A stretch of 64,000 nt of DNA from Orbicella franksi (lineage: Eukaryota). The notes under the pieces are model-generated. The model worked only from the letters and a program-made list of their open reading frames with translations, had not been told where the DNA came from and did not search any database. The stretch is from the NCBI GenBank assembly GCA_964199315.1, contig OZ116706.1, forward strand, positions 1,302,001 to 1,366,000, given 5' to 3'. This document shows, piece after piece, positions 101 through 17,259 of the stretch (its first letter is position 1; each line of letters starts with the position of its first letter). A program made the translations under genes and the position numbers.

Positions 101-758
101 GGTACCACTGGATTTCCATGGATTGATGCAGTAATGCGTCAGTTGCGGATAGAGGGTTGGATTCCTCATGTAGCACGTCAGGCTGTTGGATGTTTCTTGA
201 CCAGGGGATGCCTTTGGGTTAACTGGGAAGAGGGATACAAGGTAGATAAAGAGCGACTAGAAGTGGTTTCATTTGTAACATAACAGCAGCAGTAAGGATT
301 AAAATGTGTTTATTGTAGGTTTTTGACGAGCTTCAGTTGGATGCAGAGTGGAGTCTGAATGTAGGCAACTGGCTGTGGCTGTCAGGAAGCACTTTTGTGA
401 AAGAGCATGTACCTTGGTTCTGTCCAGTGGAGGTTGGAAGAAAGGTTGATCCCACTGGTGAATATGTGAGGTAAGTACATTTGTAGTTGCAAGGTTGTGT
501 TTTGAAAAGGTAAACATATGAAAAAGGTTTTTACTATGTCCTGAAAACTGTGTTGCAGAAAATTTGTACCAGAAGTCAAAGGTTTGCCCACAGACTACTT
601 GTTTGAACCGTGGAAAGCTCCTGAATCTGTGCAACAAGCTGCTAGATGTGTGGTGGGTAGAGACTATCCTTTACCACTTGTGGACCACAAAGAGCAGAGG
701 AGAGTTTGCGTACAGAGGCTGAAAGAGCTGGCTCATAGTATTGGTGCTGATATTCCTG
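101..758 (+). CDS. Cryptochrome module M1 (partial; exons d-f only)
   Basis: Exons 101-241, 319-470, 559-758. The window begins inside intron c-d. Encodes [12 protein letters not shown]...[11 protein letters not shown]...[18 protein letters not shown]...ADIP. Confidence 0.9.
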
Positions 759-3700
759 GTAAATAGTACAGCTGTTTGGAGTATTGCTGCCAGCATTATT
801 CAGCTGTCCGATATTACAGATATATCAGTGCCTTTGAAAATTTTGAATCAAGTTGATTGCTTAGTAATAGCATCTTTTTATGTTAGATATTCAAGATGAC
901 TGGATAGGAAATGAGAATACAAATTCTAAAATAAGACAGTTTCTCGTACTATAGTAACTAAAAAGAGAAGGTTAACGCCAAACAGAAAATCCATGTGTTA
1001 TGGGAAGGTTAAAAAAGTAGCATAAGATTGAAGAGTTACCTTGAGCTCAGAATTCTCCAATATTTGTGTGAAGATGGTTAAGTAAAGTTAGTTTCCTATT
1101 GATGCTGAATACTTGACAAGTGGAGGGTATTTGAGTGTGGAAAAATGCTGAGAAGATATATGGCTGTTAAGCTGTTGGATTTGTTTGTTTGTTTTGTTTT
1201 GTTGCAGTGGAGCAAAGAACATACACTAGTTTGCACTTGTTTAGAAAAGACCTGAGACTCCATGACAACCCTACATTGCGTACCTGTTTGGAAGGTAGTG
1301 GCACATTCTACCCTGTGTACGTCTTGGACACTGCAGCTGCGAGGCAAGGCAAGATCTCTGCAAACCGCTGGAATTTTTTGCTGGAGAGCCTGAGAGATCT
1401 GGATAGTCAGTTGGCTAGGCTGGGATCGCACCTGTTTGTTGTGCGTGGCAGGGATGTGGAGGTGCTGCCAAAGCTCTTGTCAGAGTGGGGAGTAACGCGC
1501 CTTAGTTTTGAAAGTGATGGAGAGCCATTTGGAGCTCAGAGAGATGCTGTGATTCGACACATAGCCGAGGAAGCAGGAGTTGAAGTGTTAAGCAAAACAT
1601 CACACACACTGTACGAGCCAGGTCAGATTATACATGGCAATCAGGGTGATATACCTATGCTGTTCAAGGAGTTTGTGAGAATTGTAGAAGAGAACAAGCT
1701 AGGTGTACCCAATCCAGTCAAAGAGGTGGACAGACGATTGGTAGGGTGCTGTGTGACACCAGTAGCTGTTGACCACCAGGCTAAGTATGGAATTCCTGAA
1801 TTGAGTGAATTAGGCGTGAAAGACATCCGATGTGTGACAAGTGCAGCATTGTGGAGAGGAGGAGAACAAGAAGCACTGAGGAGACTTATCCTTCTGGAGC
1901 AAGAGGTAAGCTATGATAAGAGGAATTGCAATATGGAAAGTGTTTTAAAGTTGGGTATCACTTTGTCAGACTTGAAGGCCTCAGTGTTCATCACAGATAC
2001 ATGTTTGGTTCAGACGGACTGGGGATACAATGTAGATATAGAAATTTTACCAGTGTTTAATTAACATGCATATATGAAGGGATTGATAGTGTCTGTCAAT
2101 TAAAGAGAGTTTCCATTGTTATGCTGATTATCTGTTGGATTATTTTTCAGCTGGCCAAAAATGACTTTGAAGAAGTAGCACTGAGTGCAGAAACCATGCC
2201 ATCATCTCCCACCCACCTAAGCCCTTACCTACGATTTGGATGTCTGTCACCCAGAGTGATGTGGCATCGGCTGAATGATTGTTATGGAAAGGTGGGTATC
2301 TTAGTTAAAAGATGGAAGTGAAGTTGGTGTTAGTAAAGCAGAATGAACTGGAAAGTTTTGTGGAATTCAATGTTGTTTTGGTGCTGCACAATGTAAGAGG
2401 TTTACTTTGCAGACAAAGAGTCACAGCAAAATACATTCACTAAATGAGTGTTGCAGATGTTGCCAAATTTTGAGTCTTGATATAAGGGGTTTCTTTTGTT
2501 GAAAGAAGTCACAAGTAAAAGTTTATTTTTCCTACAGGCAAAGGGAGAAGCTCCGCCTGTGTCATTTCATGAACCACTTCTACTACGAGAGTTTTTCTTC
2601 ACCATGGCTAGTGCCAACCCAGGTTTGCATAAGATGGACAACAACCCTATGTCTGTTCAGTATCCTTGGGAAGAAAATGCTGAGGGTCTCCAGAGGTGGA
2701 AGAACGTAAGTGCTAGCTGTGGCAAATGCGCGTTGGACATTACCATTTTGTTTAGTCAACAATTTTTGGGGTGAGTCTAATGCTGTATTTGAACGTCTTG
2801 TGTCTCTTTCAGGGTACCACTGGATTTCCATGGATTGATGCAGTAATGCGTCAGTTGCGGATAGAGGGTTGGATTCCTCATGTAGCACGTCAGGCTGTTG
2901 GATGTTTCTTGACCAGGGGATGCCTTTGGGTTAACTGGGAAGAGGGATACAAGGTAGATAAAGAGCGACTAGAAGTGGTTTCATTTGTAACATAACAGCA
3001 GCAGTAAGGATTAAAATGTGTTTATTGTAGGTTTTTGACGAGCTTCAGTTGGATGCAGAGTGGAGTCTGAATGTAGGCAACTGGCTGTGGCTGTCAGGAA
3101 GCACTTTTGTGAAAGAGCATGTACCTTGGTTCTGTCCAGTGGAGGTTGGAAGAAAGGTTGATCCCACTGGTGAATATGTGAGGTAAGTACATTTGTAGTT
3201 GCAAGGTTGTGTTTTGAAAAGGTAAACATATGAAAAAGGTTTTTACTATGTCCTGAAAACTGTGTTGCAGAAAATTTGTACCAGAAGTCAAAGGTTTGCC
3301 CACAGACTACTTGTTTGAACCGTGGAAAGCTCCTGAATCTGTGCAACAAGCTGCTAGATGTGTGGTGGGTAGAGACTATCCTTTACCACTTGTGGACCAC
3401 AAAGAGCAGAGGAGAGTTTGCGTACAGAGGCTGAAAGAGCTGGCTCATAGTATTGGTGCTGATATTCCTGGTAAATAGTACAGCTGTTTGGAGTATTGCT
3501 GCCAGCATTATTCAGCTGTCTGATATTACGGATATATTGTCGTGTTTGAAAATTTTGAATCAAGTAGATTTCTTAGTAACAGCGTGTTTTAATGTTAGAT
3601 ATTCAAGATGACTGGATCGGAAATGAGAATACAAATTCTAAAATAAGACAGTTTCTCTTACTATAGAAAGCAAAACAAGGGACGTTTAAGCCAAGCAGAA

Positions 3701-6700
3701 ATTCCATGTGTTATAGGAGGCTAAAAAATTAACATAGGATTAAAGAGTTATCTTGAGCTCAGAATTCTTCAATATTAATTTTGAATTAAGATCGTTAAGT
3801 AAAGTTAGTTTGCTATTTATGCTGAATACTTGACAAGTGGAGGGTATTTCATTATGGAAAAATGCTGAGAAGATATATGGCTGTTAAGCTGTTAAGCTGT
3901 TGGATTTGTTTGTTTGTTTTGTTTTGTTGCAGTGGAGCAAAGAACACACACTAGTCTGCACTTGTTTAGAAAAGACCTGAGACTCCATGACAACCCTACA
4001 TTGCGTGCCTGTTTGGAAGGTAGTGGCACATTCTACCCTGTGTACATTTTGGACATTGCAGCTGCGAGGCAAGGCAAGATCTCTGCAAACCGCTGGAATT
4101 TTTTGCTGGAGAGCCTGAGAGATCTGGATAGTCAGTTGGCTAGGCTGGGATCGCACCTGTTTGTTGTGCGTGGCAGGGATATGGAGGTGCTGCCAAAGCT
4201 CTTGTCAGATTGGGGAGTAACGCGCCTTAGTTTTGAAAGTGATGGAGAGCCATTTGGAGCTCAGAGAGATGCTGTGATTCGACACATAGCCGAGGAAGCA
4301 GGAGTTGAAGTGTTGAGCAAAACATCACACACGCTGTTCGAGCTAGGTCAGATTATACATGGCAATCAGGGTAATATACCTATGCTGTTCAAGGAGTTTG
4401 TGAGAATTGTAGAAGAGAACAAGCTAGGTGTACCCAATCCAGTCAAAGAGGTGGACAGACGATTGGTAGGGTGTTGTGTGACACCAGTAGCTGTTGACCA
4501 CCAGGCTAAGTATGGAATTCCTGAATTGAGTGAATTAGGCGTGAAAGACATCCGATGTGTGACAAGTGCAGCATTGTGGAGAGGAGGAGAACAAGAAGCA
4601 CTGAGGAGACTTATCCTTCTGGAGCAAGAGGTAAGCTATGATAAGAGGCATTGCAATATGGAAGGTACTTTAAAGTTGGGTATCACTTTGTCAGACTTGA
4701 AGGCCACAGTGTTCATGACAGGTACATGTTTGGTTCAGACGGACTGGAGATACAATGTAGATATAGAAATTTTAGCAGTGTTTAATTAACATACGTGTAT
4801 AAAGGGATTGATAGTGTCTGTCAATTAAAGAAAGTTTCCATTGTTATGCTGATTATCTGTTGGATTATTTTTCAGCTGGCCAAAAATGACTTTGAAGAAG
4901 TAGCACTGAGTGCAGAAACCATGCCATCATCTCCTACCCACCTAAGCCCTTACCTACGATTTGGATGTCTGTCACCCAGAGTGATGTGGCATCGGCTGGA
5001 TGATTGTTATGGAAAGGTGGGTATCTCACTTAAAAGATGGAAGTGAAGTTGGTGTTAGTAAAGCAGAATGAACTGGAGAGTTTTGTGTAATGAAATGTGT
5101 TTTTGGTGCTGCACAATGTAGGAGATTTACGTTGCAGACAAAAAGTCACAGCAAAATACATTCACAAAATGAGTGTTGCAGATGTGCAGATAAGTTTTTT
5201 GTTGTTGTTGAAAGAAGTCACAAGTAAAAGTTTATTTTTCCTACAGGCAAAGGGAGAAGCTCCACCTGTGTCATTTCATGAACCACTTCTACTACGAGAG
5301 TTTTTCTTCACCATGGCTAGTGCCAACCCAGGTTTGCATAAGATGGACAACAACCCTATGTCTGTTCAGTATCCTTGGGAAGAAAATGCTGAGGGTCTCC
5401 AGAGGTGGAAGAACGTAAGTGCTAGCTGTGGCAAATGCGCGTTGGACATTACCATTTTGTTTAGTCAACAATTTTTGGGGTGAGTCTAATGCTGTATTTG
5501 AACGTCTTGTGTCTCTTTCAGGGTACCACTGGATTTCCATGGATTGATGCAGTAATGCGTCAGTTGCGGATAGAGGGTTGGATTCCTCATGTAGCACGTC
5601 AGGCTGTTGGATGTTTCTTGACCAGGGGATGCCTTTGGGTTAACTGGGAAGAGGGATACAAGGTAGATAAAGAGCGACTAGAAGTGGTTTCATTTGTAAC
5701 ATAACAGCAGCAGTAAGGATTAAAATGTGTTTATTGTAGGTTTTTGACGAGCTTCAGTTGGATGCAGAGTGGAGTCTGAATGTAGGCAACTGGCTGTGGC
5801 TGTCAGGAAGCACTTTTGTGAAAGAGCATGTACCTTGGTTCTGTCCAGTGGAGGTTGGAAGAAAGGTTGATCCCACTGGTGAATATGTGAGGTAAGTACA
5901 TTTGTAGTTGCAAGGTTGTGTTTTGAAAAGGTAAACATATGAAAAAGGTTTTTACTATGTCCTGAAAACTGTGTTGCAGAAAATTTGTACCAGAAGTCAA
6001 AGGTTTGCCCACAGAATACTTGTTTGAACCGTGGAAAGCTCCTGAATCTGTGCAACAAGCTGCTAGATGTGTGGTGGGTAGAGACTATCCTTTACCACTT
6101 GTGGACCACAAAGAGCAGAGGAGAGTTTGTGTGCAGAGGCTGAAAGAGCTGGCTCATAGTATTGGTGCTGATATTCCTGGTAAATAGTATACCTGTTTGG
6201 AGTATTGCTGCCACCATTATTCAGCTGTCGGAAATTTTAGATGTATTATGGAGTTTGAAATTTTGGAATCAAGTGGATTTCTTAGTAATAGCGTGTTTTG
6301 ATGTTAGATATTCAAGATGGGTGGTAGGAAATGAGAATACAAAACCTAAAATAAGACAGTTTTCTTGTACTATAGAAACTAAAAAGAGGGACGTTTAAGC
6401 AAAGCATAAATTCCATGTGTTATGCAAAGTGTGAAAAATTAGCATTAGATTAAAGAGTTATCTGGAGCTCAATTCTCCAATATTTGTGTGAAGATGGTTA
6501 AGTAAAGTTAGTTTGCTATTGATGCTGAATACTTGAGAAGTGGAGGGTATTGTAGTACGGAAAAATGCTGAGAAGATATACATGTATGACTGTTAAGGTT
6601 TTTGATTTGTTTGTTTGTTTTGTTTTGTTGCAGTGGAGCAAAGAACACACACTAGTCTGCACTTGTTTAGAAAAGACCTGAGACTCCATGACAACCCTAC

Positions 6701-9700
6701 ACTGCGTGCCTGTTTGGAAGGTAGTGGCACATTCTACCCTGTGTACGTCTTGGACACTGCTGCTGCGAGGCAAGGCAAGATCTCTGCAAACCGCTGGAAT
6801 TTTTTGCTGGAGAGCCTGAGAGATCTGGATAGTCAGTTGGCTAGGCTGGGATCACACCTGTTTGTTGTGCGTGGCAGGGATGTGGAGGTGCTGCCAAAGC
6901 TCTTGTTAGAGTGGGGAGTCACGCGCCTTAGTTTTGAAAGTGATGGAGAGCCATTTGGAGCTCAGAGAGATGCTGTGATTCGACACATAGCCGAGGAAGC
7001 AGGAGTTGAAGTGTTAAGCAAAACATCACACACGCTGTTCGAGCTAGGTCAGATTATACATGGCAATCAGGGTAATATACCTATGCTGTTCAAGGAGTTT
7101 GTGAGAATTGTAGAAGAGAACAAGCTAGGTGTACCCAATCCAGTCAAAGAGGTGGACAGACAATTGGTAGGGTGTTGTGTGACACCAGTAGCTGTTGACC
7201 ACCAGGCTAAGTATGGAATTCCTGAATTGAGTGAATTAGGCGTGAAAGACATCCGATGTGTGACAAGTGCAGCATTGTGGAGAGGAGGAGAACAAGAAGC
7301 ACTGAGGAGACTTATCCTTCTGGAGCAAGAGGTAAGCTATGATAAGAGGCATTGCAATATGGAAGGTATTTTAAAGTTGGGTATCACTTTGTCAGACTTG
7401 TAGGCCACAGTGTTCATGACAGGTACATGTTTGGTTCAGACGGACTGGGGATACGATGTAGATATAGGAATTTTAGTGGTGTTTAATTAACATACATATA
7501 TGAAGGGATTGATAGTGTCTGTCAATTAAAGAGAGTTTCCATTGTTATGCTGATTATCTGTTGGATTATTTTTCAGCTGGCCAAAAATGACTTTGAAGAA
7601 GTAGCACTGAGTGCAGAAACCATGCCATCATCTCCCACCCACCTAAGCCCTTACCTACGATTTGGATGTCTGTCACCCAGAGTGATGTGGCATCGGCTGG
7701 ATGATTGTTATGGAAAGGTGGGTATCTTAGTTAAAAGATGGAAGTGCAGTTGGTGTTAGTAAAGCAGAATGAACTGGAAAGTTTTGTGGAATTCAATGTT
7801 GTTTTGGTGCTGCACAATGTAAGAGGTTTACGTTGCAGATAAAGAGTCACAGCAAAATACATTCACAAAATGAGTGTTGCAGATGTTGCCAAATTTTGAG
7901 TCTTGATATAAGGGGTTTCTTTTGTTGAAAGAAGTCACAAGTAAAAGTTTATTTTTCCTACAGGCAAAGGGAGAAGCTCCGCCTGTGTCATTTCATGAAC
8001 CACTTCTACTACGAGAGTTTTTCTTCACCATGGCTAGTGCCAACCCAGGTTTGCATAAGATGGACAACAACCCTATGTCTGTTCAGTATCCTTGGGAAGA
8101 AAATGCTGAGGGTCTCCAGAGGTGGAAGAAGGTAAGTGCTAGCTGTGGCAAATGCGCGTTGGACATTACCATTTTGTTTAGTCAACAATTTTTGGGGTGA
8201 GGCTAAGGCTGTATTTGAACGTCTTGTGTCTCTTTCAGGGTACCACTGGATTTCCATGGATTGATGCAGTAATGCGTCAGTTGCGGATAGAGGGTTGGAT
8301 TCCTCATGTAGCACGTCAGGCTGTTGGATGTTTCTTGACCAGGGGATGCCTTTGGGTTAACTGGGAAGAGGGATACAAGGTAGATAAGGAGTGACTAGAA
8401 GTGGTTTCATTTGTAACATAACAGCAGCAGTAAGGATTAAAATGTGTTTATTGTAGGTTTTTGACGAGCTTCAGTTGGATGCAGAGTGGAGTCTGAATGT
8501 AGGCAACTGGCTGTGGCTGTCGGGAAGCACTTTTGTGAAAGAGCATGTACCTTGGTTCTGTCCAGTGGAGGTTGGAAGAAAGGTTGATCCCACTGGTGAA
8601 TATGTGAGGTAAGTACATTTGTAGTTGCAAGGTTGTGTTTTGAAAAGGTAAACATATGAAAAGGTTTTTACTATGTCCTGAAAACTGTGTTGCAGAAAAT
8701 TTGTACCAGAAGTCAAAGGCTTGCCCACAAGCTACTTGTTTGAACCGTGGAAAGCTCCTGAATCTGTGCAACAAGCTGCTAGATGTGTGGTGGGTAGAGA
8801 CTATCCTTTACCACTTGTGGACCACAAAGAGCAGAGGAGAGTTTGTGTGCAGAGGCTGAAAGAGCTGGCTCATAGTATTGGTGCTGATATTCCTGGTAAA
8901 TAGTACAGCTGTTTGGAGTATTGCTGCCAGCATTATTCAGCTGTCTGATATTACGGATATATTGTCGTGTTTGAAAATTTTGAATCAAGTAGATTTCTTA
9001 GTAACAGCGTGTTTTAATGTTAGATATTCAAAATGACTGGATCAGAAATGAGAATACAAATTCTAAAATAAGACAGTTTCTCTTACTATAGAAAGCAAAA
9101 CAAGGGACGTTTAAGCCAAGCAGAAATTCCATGTGTTATAGGAGGCTAAAAAAAATTAACATAGGATTAAAGAGCTATCTTGAGCTCAGAATTCTTCAAT
9201 ATTAATTTTGTATTAAGATCGTTAAATAAAGTTAGTTTGCTATTTATGCTGAATACTTGAGAAGTGGAGGGTATTGTAGTATGGAAAAATGCTGAGCAGA
9301 TATATGGCTGTTAAGCTGTTGGATTTGTTTGTTTGTTTTGTTTTGTTGCAGTGGAGCAAAGAACACACACTAGTCTGCACTTGTTTAGAAAAGACCTGAG
9401 ACTCCATGACAACCCTACATTGCGTGCCTGTTTGGAAGGTAGTGGCACATTCTACCCTGTGTACATTTTGGACATTGCAGCTGCAAGGCAAGGCAAGATC
9501 TCTGCAAACCGCTGGAATTTTTTGCTGGAGAGCCTGAGAGATCTGGATAGTCAGTTGGCTAGGCTGGGATCGCACCTGTTTGTTGTGCGTGGCAGGGATA
9601 TGGAGGTGCTGCCAAAGCTCTTGTCAGATTGGGGAGTAACGCGCCTTAGTTTTGAAAGTGATGGAGAGCCATTTGGAGCTCAGAGAGATGCTGTGATTCG

Positions 9701-12700
9701 ACACATAGCCGAGGAAGCAGGAGTTGAAGTGTTGAGCAAAACATCACACACGTTGTACGAGCCAGGTCAGATTATACATGGCAATCAGGGTAATATACCT
9801 ATGCTGTTCAAGGAGTTTGTGAGAATTGTAGAAGAGAACAAGCTAGGTGTACCCAATCCAGTCAAAGAGGTGGACAGACGATTGGTAGGGTGTTGTGTGA
9901 CACCAGTAGCTGTTGACCACCAGGCTAAGTATGGAATTCCTGAATTGAGTGAATTAGGCGTGAAAGACATCCGATGTGTGACAAGTGCAGCATTGTGGAG
10001 AGGAGGAGAACAAGAAGCACTGAGGAGACTTATCCTTCTGGAGCAAGAGGTAAGCTATGATAAGAGGCATTGCAATATGGAAGGTACTTTAAAGTTGGGT
10101 ATCACTTTGTCAGACTTGTAGGCCACAGTGGTCATGACAGATACATGTTTGGTTCAGACAGACTGGGGATACAATGTAGATATAGAAATTTTAGCAGTGT
10201 TTAATTAACATACGTGTATAAAGGGATTGATAGTGTCTGTCAATTAAAGAAAGTTTCCATTGTTATGCTGATTATCTGTTGGATTATTTTTCAGCTGGCC
10301 AAAAATGACTTTGAAGAAGTAGCACTGAGTGCAGAAACCATGCCATCATCTCCCACCCACCTGAGCCCTTACCTACGATTTGGATGTCTGTCACCCAGAG
10401 TGATGTGGCATCGGCTGGATGATTGTTATGGAAAGGTGGGTATCTCACTTAAAAGATGGAAGTGAAGTTGGTGTTAGTAAAGCAGAATGAACTGGAAAGT
10501 TTTGTGTAATTGAATGTGTTTTTGGTGCTGTAGAATGTAGGAGAGTTACGTTGCAGATAAAGAGTCACAGCAAAATACATTCACAAAATGAGTGTTGCAG
10601 ATGTGCAGATAAGTTTTTTGTTGTTGTTGAAAGAAGTCACAAGTAAAAGTTTATTTTTCCTACAGGCAAAGGGAGAAGCTCCACCTGTGTCATTTCATGA
10701 ACCACTTCTACTACGAGAGTTTTTCTTCACCATGGCTAGTGCCAACCCAGGTTTGCATAAGATGGACAACAACCCTATGTCTGTTCAGTATCCTTGGGAA
10801 GAAAATGCTGAGGGTCTCCAGAGGTGGAAGAAGGTAAGTGCTAGCTGTGGCAAATGTGCGTTGTTACCATTTTGGGTAGTCAACAATTTTTGGGGGGAGT
10901 TTAAGACTGTATTTGAACGTCTTGTGTCTCTTTCAGGGTACCACTGGATTTCCATGGATTGATGCAGTAATGCGTCAGTTGCGGATAGAGGGTTGGATTC
11001 CTCATGTAGCACGTCAGGCTGTTGGATGTTTCTTGACCAGGGGATGCCTTTGGGTTAACTGGGAAGAGGGATACAAGGTAGATAAAGAGCGACTAGAAGT
11101 GGTTTCATTTGTAACATAACAGCAGCAGTAAGGATTAAAATGTGTTTATTGTAGGTTTTTGACGAGCTTCAGTTGGATGCAGAATGGAGTCTGAATGTAG
11201 GCAACTGGCTGTGGCTGTCAGGAAGCACTTTTGTGAACGAGCATGTACCTTGGTTCTGTCCAGTGGAGGTTGGAAGAAAGGTTGATCCCACTGGTGAATA
11301 TGTGAGGTATTTTTTATAAGAAGGCCTAAGATTAATTTTGTGAATACTGTTTTATGGGATTGCTACCTTTGGTTTGTTATGGAAGGCATTTGCCGTTTGA
11401 AATTATTGACTTTTCTTCTGTATTCAGCTTACAACATGAATGTAAACTGGACAAGACACAAAAATAATGAATGTCTGAACTAGATTGTGATGATAGTGTT
11501 AGGTTATTATTAAATGTGGTTAAGTTTTTCTTGTTGAGAGTGACAGGGTGGTCCTTGTTGGAGGGATATAATTTTCTAAACGAGGTTTCTGGAGGAGTAG
11601 AATTCTTTTTTGCACTGTAATTGTAGTTCCTTCCATTCATATTTTAATCTACTCTTTAAGATATCTTTTTCATATTTTTTTTTTTTCGCCCAGGGCACCC
11701 ATCGGGTTTCGTCCACATCGTAGTAAATATCTAGAGGTGGCAAGTTGTAATGTACTGATTTTGAAACGTGGTGGAATGGATATTATCCATAAACATTGTA
11801 TGGTTTACTGTTTTTTTTGATCGCGGATTTTCTAAGGTTTCCTTTCTCTGAATTGTGTAGGTTTTTGTTTATTGTTCTTAGTACCCTGATATTCTGTCTC
11901 TAAACTTTGCTTGCAGGAAATATGTTCCTGAACTGAAGAGATTACCTCTAAAGTATTTGTTTGAACCATGGAGAGCACCTTTGAAAGTGCAAAAAGCTGC
12001 ACGGTGCATTGTGGGTGACGATTATCCTGAACCTGTGGCTAGTCACACTGAACAGCGGGAAATCTGTGTTCGGCGCTTGAAAGATCTCTGCATCTCTTTG
12101 GATATTTTTGGTACTTATTCGAGTATTGTTTAGAACTATTCACGATGCATACAGATTTTTGTATTCACAGTAACACTTGTACAGGTTTCTTTCCCTCTTA
12201 GTTTCCAAAGCAATTTAATGCTGTGTATCATTGTGACCCTTTGTGCCACGTGGCATGAGAGGGATAGTTAGTTAGTACTTCTGATATAAGAATGAGATCC
12301 CCTTTGTGAGGAAGAACTCGTATATAAACAACAGCCTCCATTTGACTTAAAAATATGCTCGAATATTTGTCCGCGGACATTATCTGTTCCCCGAAGCCCA
12401 CAGTCTTCCTCGAGCTTCGCTGTTGGAAAACTGTTCGCCTCTCGGAACAGACAATGTCCGCGCAGTAACATCTGAGCCTATTTTTTCGCGCCAAATAGAA
12501 GCTATTGTTTATATATCTGCCACAGCTGAGAAAGAGTGACTCGAACAGTGTGGAATGAGAAGAGGGGCCAGCTGCAGTGAAACTGGCCCTGCTTCGGATG
12601 CTTTTTGTTTGTTCATGTAGTAGTTTCATTCAGCGTTTGTTATATCCCTCAACTGTTTTGTTTTCCACTGGAGAAAACCTTATGACACCGTGGGTTCAGA

Positions 12701-15700
12701 ACTGTATAACCCTATAGTGGTCCCCTAGGACATCGTTTGGTAGATGACAAGGTCTGCTGGAAATTCAGGGAACTCTACCAACCATGATGGCGACACCGAT
12801 GACAACGATAAAAAAAATTCTCGCTACTAAACTTGAATGTGTTTAGCGTCTTGTTTCAGAAGTGACCCCCTCACTGTTGAATTGGAAAAAACAATTTGGT
12901 CATTTCACATGTTGAATGTAGAACAAACATGTTAAGCGAAGACTCTGCTCCTTCTGTTTGAGAGCGTTTTCAATGCTGTTGAAATTATGTTTACCAAAAT
13001 TTGACGTTCGGTGACAGAAGTCACTGCCAACCTCAGTCAAAACAAATCTTTACTCGTACGAAGCATGGCGCTTCTGTTCATTTGATCTATTAATTTTTCC
13101 CTTTTTAGGTCATAGGAGCCTTCATTGGTTCAGAAAGGACCTGAGACTTCACGACAATCCCAGCCTGCGTGAATGTCTCGCAGACAGCAAGGTGTTTTAC
13201 GGAGTGTACTTCTTGGAGTGTTCTGCTGAAGATAAGATGACTGTCAGCCCAAACCGCTGGCATTTCCTGCTTCAGTCACTTCAAGACCTCGACAGGGGTC
13301 TTGCTCAGTGTGGTTCACGTCTTTTTGTGCTGAAGGGAAGACCTATGGACATGCTGCCTTCACTTTTTAAAGAGTGGGGCATCACTCGGCTGTCGTTCGA
13401 GGTTGATTGTGAGCCATTTAGGAAGAGCAGGGATGCGGTCATCACTGGTCTTACTAAACAAAGTGGAGTTGAAGTGATCAGCCGTGTTTCACACACTCTT
13501 TATGATGCTGAAGTGCTGTTGATGTCAACTGAGGGAAGAGCACCACAAGTGTTTGATGAGTTTATGGAGGTTGCATTGCAGCTAGGAAGGCCACAGATGC
13601 CGGCACCAAGGGTCAATAGACAGCTGTTTGGCTCCTGTTTGACTCCTGTAGCGAGAGACCATAACCAACAATACGGAGTACCTACCGTGGAGGAGATAGG
13701 CTTCCAAAAACCAGCTGCTACCGGCTCTTGGTTTTACCCAGGTGGGGAGCAGGAGGCTTTAACGAGAATGGAAGCAGCTTTGCAAAAGGTATTACTCCTT
13801 TTGCTATGCATATCCCTGTAGTTTGTAATTTAGGTGCAATACTCCTTGCACAGCCTTGCATGCATTTGACATTCTTTTCTTTTGAGAAGTGTGCCCAACG
13901 GAGTTCAGAACAATCTCTGTTTTGCAAAGGGAGGAAATAACGTGTAAGACAAACAACAAGGAAAAAAATAAGTGTTACTCCATCTTTTTTTAGTCATTAT
14001 GAAAAAGCTTCTAATAAGGGATGTTGTACCTGTAGGAATTGTCTGTACGTCACGTATTATACGGTAACTGCAAAAATTCTCGCGTGCTAATTGGAGCTAA
14101 TTGGAGCTAATTGGCGAATTTTCAATGTCAATAAGCGGACAGACGATAACGATGTTGTTATAGTAAAAACCAAATTGACTTCAATTTTTCATGCGTCTGT
14201 CCTGTCATTGTCGATGAATTTCGTCACAGCATTGTCAAAGTAGCTGTGGATTTACGAGGCGATAGCCGAGTCAACACATTGTTTTGACGAAATTCATGAT
14301 CAATAACAGGACGGACGCAAGAAAAAGGGACGTCAATTTGTCAATTTCCGATGACTGTAAGCAAGAGCTATCAGCCAGTAAACTATGCTTAAAAATGGAC
14401 GTGGAACTACTAGATAAGGCTAAAGCTTTCTATCAGATTGACTCTTTGTGTCTTGTAGTGAATTATTTTATTGATCCCACAGATGAAAGAGAACGATTTT
14501 TGCGATTCGCCATTAACTGCAAATTCTCTGATGCCGTCGGCAAGTCACTTGAGTCCTTACCTGAGGTTGGGCTGCCTCTCATCGCGGCTTCTTTACCAGA
14601 GAATGACTGAGGAATATATAAAGGTACACGGGAAGTCTTTTGCATGTTAATAATCCTGTAATGTGGTCTGCTTAGAGAAAAGTGTAATTGGATGTTTGCC
14701 AATGGACATATCACGTCAACAGGTGCTGCCCTTAGATAGGCACCCTATCAAGCTGTTACCAATTCCTTGAACATTTGTAAATTTCTTTGCAGAACAAGAC
14801 AGTGAATCCGCCTCCAGAGGTGTACAGTAAGCTCTTTTGGCGTGAGTTCTTTTTTCTTGTTGGAAGCCAGGTGCCAGGTGCGCATGAGATGGTCAACAAT
14901 TCACTAAGTCTTCAAATTCCTTGGGAAGATTCTCCAGAGTATCTTCACAAATGGAAACAGGTCAGTCTTGAAAGGAACCTCTTACCATACCGTAACGTAC
15001 ACAATTCTAGAAGAGTCCTAATGTCCTTCTTAGGCCTATGTTATGATATCTGTTTCGATTGTATGCTCTAGAATTTTTTATTTCATAGACCGTGTGACTT
15101 GAGGTAAATAGTCATTTTGTAAACCATAGATTTTGCAACAGATGGTTTGATACAAATATCTGTAATTTGTCAATATCGAGTATTCTGCTGGCGAGATGTA
15201 AGGAAACTATATTAGAGGAAGAATTAGATAACTAAATTGTCGGTGAGAAGTCCCTAGAACAATGACGCGGTGAGAAAAGGATCTGGAAAAGACACCAGAA
15301 ACTCTGGCTCAATTCTAAAACAAAAAGTTAGCCGACAATCATTTACATCGATTATTTTGAATAAATTAGAGACAGTCTAATGTATTTTAGAGTAATTTTT
15401 GTCTAGCTAGATTGTGTGGCATTATTTATAACTTATCTTATCCATACTATCATTACTGTTTATTTATTTAATTGTTAGAACCTGAAGTGATATCGGTTTT
15501 TCCGTTTAAATACTGAAAGAGAAACCCTATAAACACCACTAAGTTATCTGCTAAATTTGCCCCCTCCATGATACCATGAATATTTCCGTCATTTGTATAG
15601 GGGACCCTTACCGTGGAAAATGCATGTTCATACAAAATCTCATACAAAAGCGCAGTCATGTGTTTGTCTGTGAAGGCGCAGTGGCCTCATGGTTAGGAGG

Positions 15701-17259
15701 CTTGACTCCGGATCGAGCGGTCCAAGATCGAGCCCTGGCCGGGGACATTGTGTTGTGTTCTTGGGCAAGACAAACTTTACTCTCACAGTGCCTCTTCACC
15801 TAGGTGTACAAATGGGTACCGGCGAATTTAATGCTGGGGTAACCCTGCGATGGACTAGGATCCCATCCAGGGGGAGTAGAAATACTTCTAGTCGCTTGAT
15901 GCTACAGAAACCGGGATAAGCTCCGGCCTGATGGACCACTTAGCTTGTGTGCATAATTTACCTTTACCATGTGTTTGTCGCAGGGTATGACTGGTTTTCC
16001 TTGGATTGACGCTATTATGAGACAACTCCACTTAGAAGGATGGATTCATGACGTTGCCCGAAAGGCCGTTGGCTCATTCTTGACACGTGGTTGTCTTTGG
16101 ATTAGCTGGGAAGAAGGGTTTAAGGTCAGTTTTACTGAGTGGTCGCCAAGCAAAGTAGGTTGCAATGTGTGTTGATTAGCACTTAAGTGCTCTAGATAAA
16201 ATACTGGACGCTGAAATTTCAAAGGCTCTAGAGTAGCTTAAGCCAACATTGATGAACTTTCCTGAGTGGTACATTTATTTGTCAGGCAAGCCAAGAGTAT
16301 TTTGGTAGGTTATCTGACTTGTCCATTATGATCTATCTACTCTTGATTTCAGTAATGAATAGCCTATTTTTTGTTCATTGTAGGTTTTTGACGAGCTTCA
16401 GTTGGATGCAGAGTGGAGTCTGAATGTAGGCAACTGGCTTTGGCTGTCAGGAAGCACTTTTGTGAAAGAGCATGTGCCTTGGTTCTGCCCAGTGGATGTT
16501 GGGAAAAAGATTGATCCCACTGGTGAATATGTGAGGTTTGTTATTTTAATTCCACTTTTGCCCAGTTTGTACTTCATTCTTCTGCCAGCTTGCAAGTGAA
16601 GAGAGCTGGGGGATGTTTGATCTGCACTCCGAAGCCAGTGTACTATAAACAAGTTATGGGGAGTCTTCGCCTTTTCGTTGATGCTCTTTGTTTTCACCTC
16701 TCTCCTCTAGCCTAGCCACAATGTGATAATTCATCATTGACGTTTTTCTTCGGAATGCTTTTCGCCAAGGACTGTTGACCAGATTTGTTGCCCTATTGGT
16801 GCAGTTGGTCTGCTTTAAATTTTGTCGAGGAAGTAAGAACCAGTGAAAGAAATACGAAGACCTGTTAGTGATGAGAACAGTTGTCAGTGATGCCGCATGA
16901 TGGTCTAAACGTTCATTTTAGACTCGAAACATTCTATTAAATATACCGTCAATAAGGAGAAGAGTTTTGGCTCGTCTGTTAACTTTGGTCATAGTTTATT
17001 TCTTTCAAGTAGTACGCTGTTGCGACATCATTAACCCTCATTTCTTTAATTTTGTTCCAGAAAATATGTCCCAGAGGTAAGAAACCTTCCCACAAACTAC
17101 ATTTTTGAACCGTGGATGGCACCACGTGATCTCCAAGAGTCTTGCGGCTGTGTGATTGGTCAAGATTATCCTGCCCCACTTGTTGATCACAGGCAGCAAC
17201 GCGTTGTGTGTGTGCAGCGGCTCCGCGACCTCGCTTTCAAATTATCTGCTACCAAGTGA
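101..17259 (+). CDS. cry: Multi-module (tandem PHR) cryptochrome / (6-4)photolyase-family protein; one spliced ORF of at least 6 modules, 5' end outside the window
   Basis: Each module has the same six exons (a-f) with family motifs [15 protein letters not shown](R)(F/L)GCLS, REFF, [10 protein letters not shown], [36 protein letters not shown] and DYP. Exon f ends in a phase-1 donor (CCTG|GTAAAT at 758, 3470, 6179, 8895; TTTG|GTACTT at 12110). Exon a starts at a phase-1 acceptor after a pyrimidine tract (TTGCAG|TG at 1208, 3933, 6634, 9352; TTTTAG|GT at 13109). The joins are therefore in frame. Spliced length in the window is 7968 nt = 2655 aa + TGA (17257-17259). Confidence 0.88.
1208..3470 (+). 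CDS. Cryptochrome module M2 (500 codons)
   Basis: Exons 1208-1905, 2151-2291, 2538-2705, 2813-2953, 3031-3182, 3271-3470 (698+141+168+141+152+200 = 1500 nt). All introns GT-AG; no internal stop seen. Confidence 0.92.
3933..6179 (+). CDS. Cryptochrome module M3 (500 codons)
   Basis: Exons 3933-4630, 4876-5016, 5247-5414, 5522-5662, 5740-5891, 5980-6179; same lengths and phases as M2. Confidence 0.92.
6634..8895 (+). CDS. Cryptochrome module M4 (500 codons)
   Basis: Exons 6634-7331, 7577-7717, 7964-8131, 8239-8379, 8457-8608, 8696-8895; same lengths and phases as M2. Confidence 0.92.
9352..12110 (+). CDS. Cryptochrome module M5 (498 codons; array-type exons a-e plus a divergent exon f)
   Basis: Exons 9352-10049, 10295-10435, 10666-10833, 10937-11077, 11155-11306, 11917-12110. 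Exon f encodes [65 protein letters not shown]. Confidence 0.9.
12321..12515. mobile_element. Palindromic MITE-like element in the M5-M6 intron
   Basis: Terminal inverted repeats TATATAAACAACAGCCTCCATTTG ... CAAATAGAAGCTATTGTTTATATA. Internal inverted pair GCGGACATTATCTGTTCC / GGAACAGACAATGTCCGC. Confidence 0.7.
13109..17259 (+). CDS. Cryptochrome module M6 (divergent terminal module, ~493 aa, no C-terminal tail)
   Basis: Exons 13109-13788, 14483-14623, 14793-14960, 15984-16124, 16384-16535, 17061-17259. Intron positions, phases and internal exon lengths (141/168/141/152) match the array. Starts [17 protein letters not shown] with no ATG and ends [17 protein letters not shown]. Confidence 0.92.
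14172..14339. repeat. Imperfect ~64-bp inverted repeat (MITE-like hairpin) in M6 intron a-b
   Basis: AAATTGACTTCAATTTTTCATGCGTCTGTCCTGTCATTG... pairs with ...CAATAACAGGACGGACGCAAGAAAAAGGGACGTCAATTT. Confidence 0.6.
15673..15950 (+). mobile_element. tRNA-derived SINE in M6 intron c-d
   Basis: Pol III A-box-like TGGCCTCATGGTTAG and degenerate B-box AGATCGAGCCC, followed by a core TTCTTGGGCAAGACAAACTTTACTCTCAC resembling SINE central domains. About 280 bp; ends ~35 nt before the exon d acceptor. Confidence 0.75.

Follow-up and report, generated by a model that had tools for sequence, protein, structure and literature searches.

The last module (M6) of a seven-module coral cryptochrome gene has very probably had its exon e overwritten by exon e of the tandem array upstream of it, through recurrent, exon-limited ectopic gene conversion from array to last module that occurred independently in several coral lineages. 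Three features mark the exon: a sharply bounded tract of high identity that includes synonymous sites, a phylogeny discordant with that of the other exons, and retention of the flanking markers. Below we describe the gene and its island of identity, the behavior of exon e in eight species, and the competing readings of the pattern.

Gene architecture and the exon e island

For a full-gene reading, the upstream 40 kb of the same contig was added to the window, that is, the whole 64,000-nt stretch of DNA analyzed here (G000:C9:1302001-1366000). The complete gene comprises seven photolyase-homology region (PHR) modules (M0, M1-M5 and M6) in a single 3488-aa frame without internal stop, running from an ATG at window coordinate -9154 to a stop codon at 17257-17259 (Table 1). 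The window covers the 3' six-sevenths of this gene, with M0 and the start codon lying upstream of it. Its first 11.3 kb form a tandem array with a 2.71-kb period and units that are 95-98% identical; each unit possesses six exons (a-f) encoding one complete 500-aa PHR, and array exon f splices in phase 1 into exon a of the following unit. The coding parts of M1-M5 differ at 0-21 of 1300 nt. Within these 1300 nt, which make up exons a-e, M1 and M2 (window -1504 to 3182) are identical throughout; M3 and M5 are separated by 9 differences, and the remaining pairs by 16-21. The identity of M1 and M2 hints at higher-order structure or a very recent duplication inside the array. Overall, M1-M5 are a young 2.7-kb tandem array, and M0 and M6 are old paralogues of it. 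The resemblance among array modules reflects the recent copying of whole 2.7-kb units rather than conversion at the level of exons.

The terminal array module M5 is chimeric, with exons a-e of array type and an exon f (11917-12110) of another type; array homology stops 2 nt past its exon e (window 11307-12110 region). The M5-type exon f is distinct and old, occurs in 8/8 species and is sister to the last-module exon f (98/97, a starred branch), which indicates that the chimeric terminal array module is ancient. At the other end, the left edge of array homology falls inside M0 exon f (window -2153 to -1954; locus L010), the first ~50 nt of which are diverged from array exon f, with the remainder and the next intron nearly identical to the array. 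Upstream on the same strand, at G000:C9 about 1266400-1281300, is another tandem-PHR gene, of at least two modules (U1 and U2); a phase 1 splice apparently joins U1 exon f to U2 exon a, and the frame ends shortly after U2 exon f. The introns of M6 contain high-copy interspersed repeats (window 15728-15922, and also 12300-12500 and 14100-14500), with a summed contig depth above 100,000 in one DNA run and many loose ends at 15728 and 15772.

M6 has the cryptochrome/photolyase architecture of an N-terminal PF00875 followed by PF03441. Its exon a matches PF00875 (DNA_photolyase) at 1e-40, and exons d, e and f match PF03441 (FAD_binding_7) at positions 50-94, 96-146 and 148-202, respectively (Pfam). 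Among solved structures, those nearest in sequence are CRY1, CRY2 and (6-4) photolyase. M6 exon e aligns without gaps to CRY1 residues 380-429, such that the D, N and W of its segment fall on CRY1 D387, N393 and W397. In CRY1, D387 and N393 are the flavin-pocket Asp and Asn, and W397 is the proximal Trp of the electron-transfer chain. The alignment agrees with the view of the first-pass annotation, made from the sequence alone, that exon e holds these three residues.

Every predicted M6 splice joint is present in RNA contigs from three libraries. The joints around exon e are d6-e6 at 16124/16384 and e6-f6 at 16535/17061, and the intermodule joint f5-a6 (M5 exon f to M6 exon a) at 12110/13109 was likewise found in three libraries, so that at least two PHR regions are joined by splicing in one ORF, as is characteristic of AnthoCRYs. 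One RNA contig continues colinear with the genome beyond the M6 stop codon with no splice. The sequencing runs that contain the gene are labeled coral or coral reef metagenome. Judged by architecture, the gene is best described as a putative tandem-PHR cryptochrome of the AnthoCRY type.

Comparison of M6 with the array revealed how abruptly similarity is confined to exon e. A blastn search of the M6 region against the window returned a single island at 94-95% identity to five array copies; the next best match was exon f at ~69% identity, and similarity of exon d to the array went undetected in this search. Over its 152 nt, M6 exon e differs from M1-M3 at 7 positions (57, 93, 105, 114, 120, 122 and 127), from M4 at 8 and from M5 at 9, and its first 56 nt are identical to those of M1-M3. 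Exon d differs from the array at 40/141 nt, with 26/47 third positions changed, and M6 exons b, c, d and f as a group differ from array exons by 28-47%. The hand counts of the first-pass annotation for exons d and e are thereby reproduced exactly, as is its description of exon f as clearly diverged (36% different). At synonymous sites, exon e of M6 and the array differ at 4.0 of 31.8 (dS 0.14), in contrast to 25 of 30 in exon d, which is saturated; synonymous sites are likewise saturated in the other M6 exons (pS 0.6-0.9). At the exon d rate, at most 7 differences in 152 nt would arise with a probability of 5e-14; for synonymous sites of exon e versus exon d, Fisher's test gives 2e-8.

When the whole module is aligned by codon, identity between M6 and the array exceeds 80% only in exon e, and all identical runs of at least 14 nt (59, 35 and 30 nt) lie within that exon; a sliding window across the whole module found no second island outside exon e. 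On the upstream side, identity extends 12 nt into the intron with one mismatch, and on the downstream side it ends at the donor GT. A DNA contig derived from the array likewise ceases to match M6 upstream of 16372. Beyond these limits the flanking introns of M6 and the array are unalignable, as had been noted from the sequence at the outset, and the introns downstream of exon e in M5 and M6 gave no blastn match to each other.

Table 1. Coordinates of the cryptochrome gene, its exons and the candidate conversion tract (window coordinates unless stated)
Feature	Position	Strand	Basis or remark
Complete cryptochrome gene	G000:C9:1292846-1319259 = window -9154 to 17259	+	ORF reading
Second tandem-PHR gene (U1, U2)	-35584 to -20696 (loci L009, L011)	same strand	at least two modules
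Array exon e, M1 (candidate donor type)	319..470	+	
Array exon e, M2	3031..3182	+	
Array exon e, M3	5740..5891	+	
Array exon e, M4	8457..8608	+	
Array exon e, M5, final array copy	11155..11306	+	array homology ends just after
M6 exon a	13109-13788	+	unconverted; ~50% protein identity to array
M6 exon b	14483-14623	+	unconverted; 46% nt difference from array
M6 exon c	14793-14960	+	unconverted; 46% nt difference from array
M6 exon d	15984..16124	+	unconverted; 40/141 nt differ from array; groups with last-module orthologues
M6 exon e (152 nt; intron phases 0 and 2)	16384..16535	+	RNA splice joints on both sides
M6 exon f with stop codon	17061..17259	+	unconverted; 36% different from array exon f
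Candidate conversion tract as it stands (exon e, 12 nt of upstream intron, donor GT)	16372..16537	+	94-95% identity to array

Exon e in eight coral species

Seven orthologous loci from other coral assemblies (L012, L013, L015, L017, L018, L019 and L020) were compared with this genome (W). Orthologues were located by a protein search with M6 exon a, which returned ORF fragments of 64-91% identity on long contigs; each species is represented by one haplotype, and assembled contigs lose rare variants. All seven loci share the same layout of array modules, a terminal array module with an f5-type exon f, and a last module. Two of them (L012:19035-19193 and L013:17449-20582) have a minus-strand Peptidase_M13 gene downstream of the cryptochrome gene, which suggests conserved synteny of the two genes.

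In 8/8 species, the last module differs from its own array by about 45% in exon b, about 45% in exon c, about 28% (25-29%) in exon d and about 38% in exon f. The corresponding distance in exon e is 3.1% in L017, 5.0% in W, 5.4% in L019, 7.2% in L012, 8.3% in L013, 13% in L018, 16% in L020 and 17% in L015. For W, L012, L017, L013 and L019, the exon e distance between last module and array is below the divergence of exon e between species.

Maximum-likelihood trees recovered a last-module clade for exons c (95/94), d (98/94) and f (100/96), all on starred branches, and such a clade was not rejected for exon b (AU p 0.41). In the exon e tree, the last module instead joins its own array in L017 (99/94, starred), L013 (95/90, starred), L018 (94/95) and L019 (89/69), and the last module of W falls within the W/L012/L017 array clade. 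A single last-module clade for exon e is rejected by the AU test (delta lnL 79, p=2.7e-7). The starred branches of the exon e tree require only three changes of last-module label, and since exon e is only 152 nt long, several nodes of its tree are weak. Array copies cluster by species in all species. The first-pass annotation had expected exon e to group by species and the remaining exons by module, and across eight species this is the pattern for exon e and for exons c, d and f, with exon b compatible. Together with the low synonymous divergence of exon e against saturation elsewhere in M6, the rejection of the last-module clade strongly supports its proposal of exon-restricted gene conversion.

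The direction of transfer can be read from residual states in the acceptor. At exon e positions 13, 31, 36, 37, 39 and 43, states found only in last modules are present in L013, L015, L018 and L020; these six last-type relic states are absent from every array copy and erased in W, L012, L017 and L019. Their survival only in the 5' part of exon e of four species argues for transfer from array to last module, a probable direction that rests on these six sites. Four of the six are weak-to-strong, one is strong-to-weak and one is neutral, too few to judge GC-biased conversion. In L015, L018 and L020, the unconverted relic 5' part encodes DAERSLN(S/C)G, and the array version in converted species is DAEWSLN(V/A)G. 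Conversion thus replaced Arg with Trp at the residue aligned with CRY1 W390.

Conversion tracts are partial, and their ends differ between lineages. In W, the 5' 56 nt and 3' 25 nt match the array exactly, with differences in between. In L013, differences lie within the first 40 nt of exon e. In L018, the 3' 100 nt are nearly identical to its own array, including L018-specific states, and the 5' 45 nt are diverged; both L013 and L018 last modules carry states of their own arrays that are specific to those species. L015 and L020 have the least-converted exon e.

The last conversion in W was probably not very recent and would be several times older than the coalescence of array units. In exon e, 7-9 nt separate the W last module from its own array and 5-8 nt from L012 arrays, and W array copies differ among themselves at 0-2 nt. 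From these distances, the last event in the W lineage may be about the age of the W/L012/L017 split. Of the seven differences, those at positions 93 and 122 seem to have arisen later, on the W array side. The W last module carries G150 as the arrays do, with C150 kept in the last modules of L012 and L017, which suggests an event in the W lineage. Finally, the terminal array copy of L012 (L012:8668-8819) has G120, like the last modules of L012 and W and unlike the other L012 array copies, and this may reflect a small reverse transfer from last module to array.

Proposed mechanism and competing readings

The transfer is best explained by DNA-templated, non-crossover ectopic gene conversion, with a tract of ~166 bp bounded by unalignable introns. 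Exons d and f beside the tract remain orthologous in eight species, hence no crossover took place, and from the distribution of sequence states the transfer was presumably non-reciprocal. A first conversion would have created the island, possibly in the common ancestor, given that in L015 and L020, too, the last module lies nearer to the array in exon e than it does in exon d. Thereafter the island would have been the only substrate for heteroduplex formation. The longest identical runs between last module and array measure 23-83 nt in exon e versus 6-17 nt in other exons, and exon e alone would offer uninterrupted identity of sufficient length for heteroduplex to form. Each conversion would restore the identity of exon e and render the island self-sustaining, with the unalignable introns fixing the tract ends. 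The last-module exon e would in this way evolve in concert with the array, with exons a-d and f keeping their own history. Under purifying selection on the flavin and Trp-chain residues, the array version is probably tolerated or favored. Self-sustaining homology leaves unexplained why the first hit fell on exon e rather than exon d and why the first module was spared. A neutral, homology-limited mechanism accounts for the pattern equally well as selection on the flavin pocket.

Selection may nonetheless refine this picture rather than replace it. Conversion could occur along the whole module and be retained only in exon e, as adaptive homogenization or 'repair', a scenario we regard as possible but rather unlikely. 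The recurrence of the pattern across many lineages would fit such retention, as would the change of pocket-region residues by conversion, namely Arg to Trp at the CRY1 W390 position. Against it, identical runs outside exon e are those of 6-17 nt, probably too short to start conversion, and the first module keeps a diverged exon e in two species. M0 exon e (window -4945 to -4794; L020:26-177) differs from the array at 40/150 nt (26%) in this genome and at 47/152 nt (31%) in L020, and it clusters with its L020 orthologue. In both species GSWLSLS replaces GNWLWLS. Ser stands in place of both Asn and the second Trp, and this change in the M0 flavin-pocket segment is conserved. This divergence of the first-module exon e implies that pocket uniformity is not required across the protein, and it contradicts the broader suggestion of the first-pass annotation that the flavin pocket is being homogenized across all modules.

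A specific form of selection, in which recurrent exon e conversion is kept as repair and a drifting terminal pocket segment (as with the Arg of L015, L018 and L020 at the CRY1 W390 position) is repeatedly reset from the array, is an unlikely idea. If true, the array and terminal modules would need matching flavin and Trp-chain photochemistry for the function of the seven-PHR protein, and the first module would have been released to another role.

Recurrent conversion must also be weighed against a single ancient conversion or partial duplication before the divergence of the corals, followed by slow evolution and no recurrence. In 8/8 species, last module and array are at most 17% apart in exon e, compared with 25-29% for exon d. 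This makes an early event in their common ancestor likely, and it may have paved the way for later ones. As the whole explanation it is improbable. An ancient event alone predicts the last-module clade that the AU test rejects, and it predicts within-species distances at least as large as those between species, yet we observed 3-8% within and 9-18% between. It would also have to account for states derived within one species that are common to its array and its last module.

Nucleotide-level constraint, in the form of splicing enhancers, RNA structure or codon bias, might in principle preserve synonymous sites of exon e without recombination. Exon e does encode the most conserved peptide of the FAD domain, and 12 nt of the acceptor region are also common to M6 and the array. 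Between species, however, the array exon e is no slower to diverge than exon d: W differs from L013 at 13/152 nt in exon e and 4 nt in exon d, from L015 at 22 and 14 nt, and from L019 at 28/152 nt (18%) and 22 nt. Among the three closest species, the last-module exon e has diverged by 7-9% between orthologues, compared with 2-4% for the adjacent exons d and f. Within this genome, exon e of M0, U1 and U2 is 61-73% identical to that of M6 or the array (27-39% different, pS 0.5-0.8). Low divergence between distant species or unrelated paralogues, which the first-pass annotation had named as the sign of such constraint, is thus not what the data contain. With between-species divergence of exon e reaching 18%, nucleotide-level constraint is ruled out for practical purposes, and we give it scarcely any credence.

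Similarly, the assembly is sound at M6 exon e. An artefact in which array reads overwrote M6 exon e in the consensus during assembly or polishing would draw some support from the short-read contigs, which break inside exon e, so that no single one covers the whole exon plus both unique flanks; these breaks arise because k-mers are shared with the array. In an independent 2018 DNA run, however, a contig over 16446-17290 carries M6-specific variants (16476-16510) and continues into unique intron. A second DNA contig spans 16097-16409 and, with the spliced RNA joints, agrees with the assembly. The phenomenon recurs, in a pattern particular to each, in seven further contigs that were assembled independently, and an artefact is hence exceedingly improbable.

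Two further routes were considered and set aside. Array homology also ends after M5 exon e, and the island could be the edge of a duplication or the product of unequal crossover; we reject this, since unequal crossover between exon e copies would duplicate or delete f5 and a6-d6, and 8/8 species have single orthologous copies. The 12 nt of upstream intron inside the region of identity, and the retention of both introns, make conversion mediated by cDNA unlikely.

Relation to known systems

Exon-limited ectopic gene conversion and concerted evolution between tandem paralogues are familiar from the primate L/M opsin, globin and RH genes. The coral exon resembles these cases in its short tract between diverged introns, its homogenized synonymous sites and the recurrence of events, and also in a phylogeny that follows species in the tract and paralogue in the flanks. 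It differs in that donor and acceptor are domains of one polypeptide rather than separate genes, and in that the donor is a multi-copy internal array and the acceptor one old module with a single exon of six involved. Whole-unit homogenization by unequal crossing-over likewise acts in this gene, on M1-M5 with their 95-98% identical units. In contrast, it cannot explain M6, where exons a-d and f around exon e are old and orthologous.

These observations have several consequences. Coral tandem-PHR cryptochromes have been described only recently, and a map is now given of which module parts evolve independently and which jointly. Functional models are constrained accordingly: the terminal exon e is tied to the array, the first module is free, and the array is homogenized as whole units. 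The residue switched by conversion (Arg/Trp at the CRY1 W390 position) offers a natural variant of the pocket region. Trees of AnthoCRY modules would be misleading if exon e were included. More broadly, the gene provides a clean example, replicated in eight species, of one-exon conversion between domains of a single polypeptide.

AnthoCRYs are cryptochromes specific to anthozoans, in which as many as six PHR regions occur in tandem (Gornik et al., Mol Biol Evol 2021, PMC8097283). The words 'gene conversion' are absent from that paper, and our literature search found no paper connecting AnthoCRY genes with gene conversion. The present gene is like the published AnthoCRYs (PMC8097283) in that several complete PHR regions share one reading frame and intron phases are conserved, and in being expressed, as judged from RNA contigs; its source is probably a coral. 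It differs in joining seven PHR regions in one frame, compared with the published maximum of six, and in having a second gene with at least two PHR modules just upstream. Overall, the process is classical and the gene family is published, and the present case is a well-replicated one between domains of one polypeptide.
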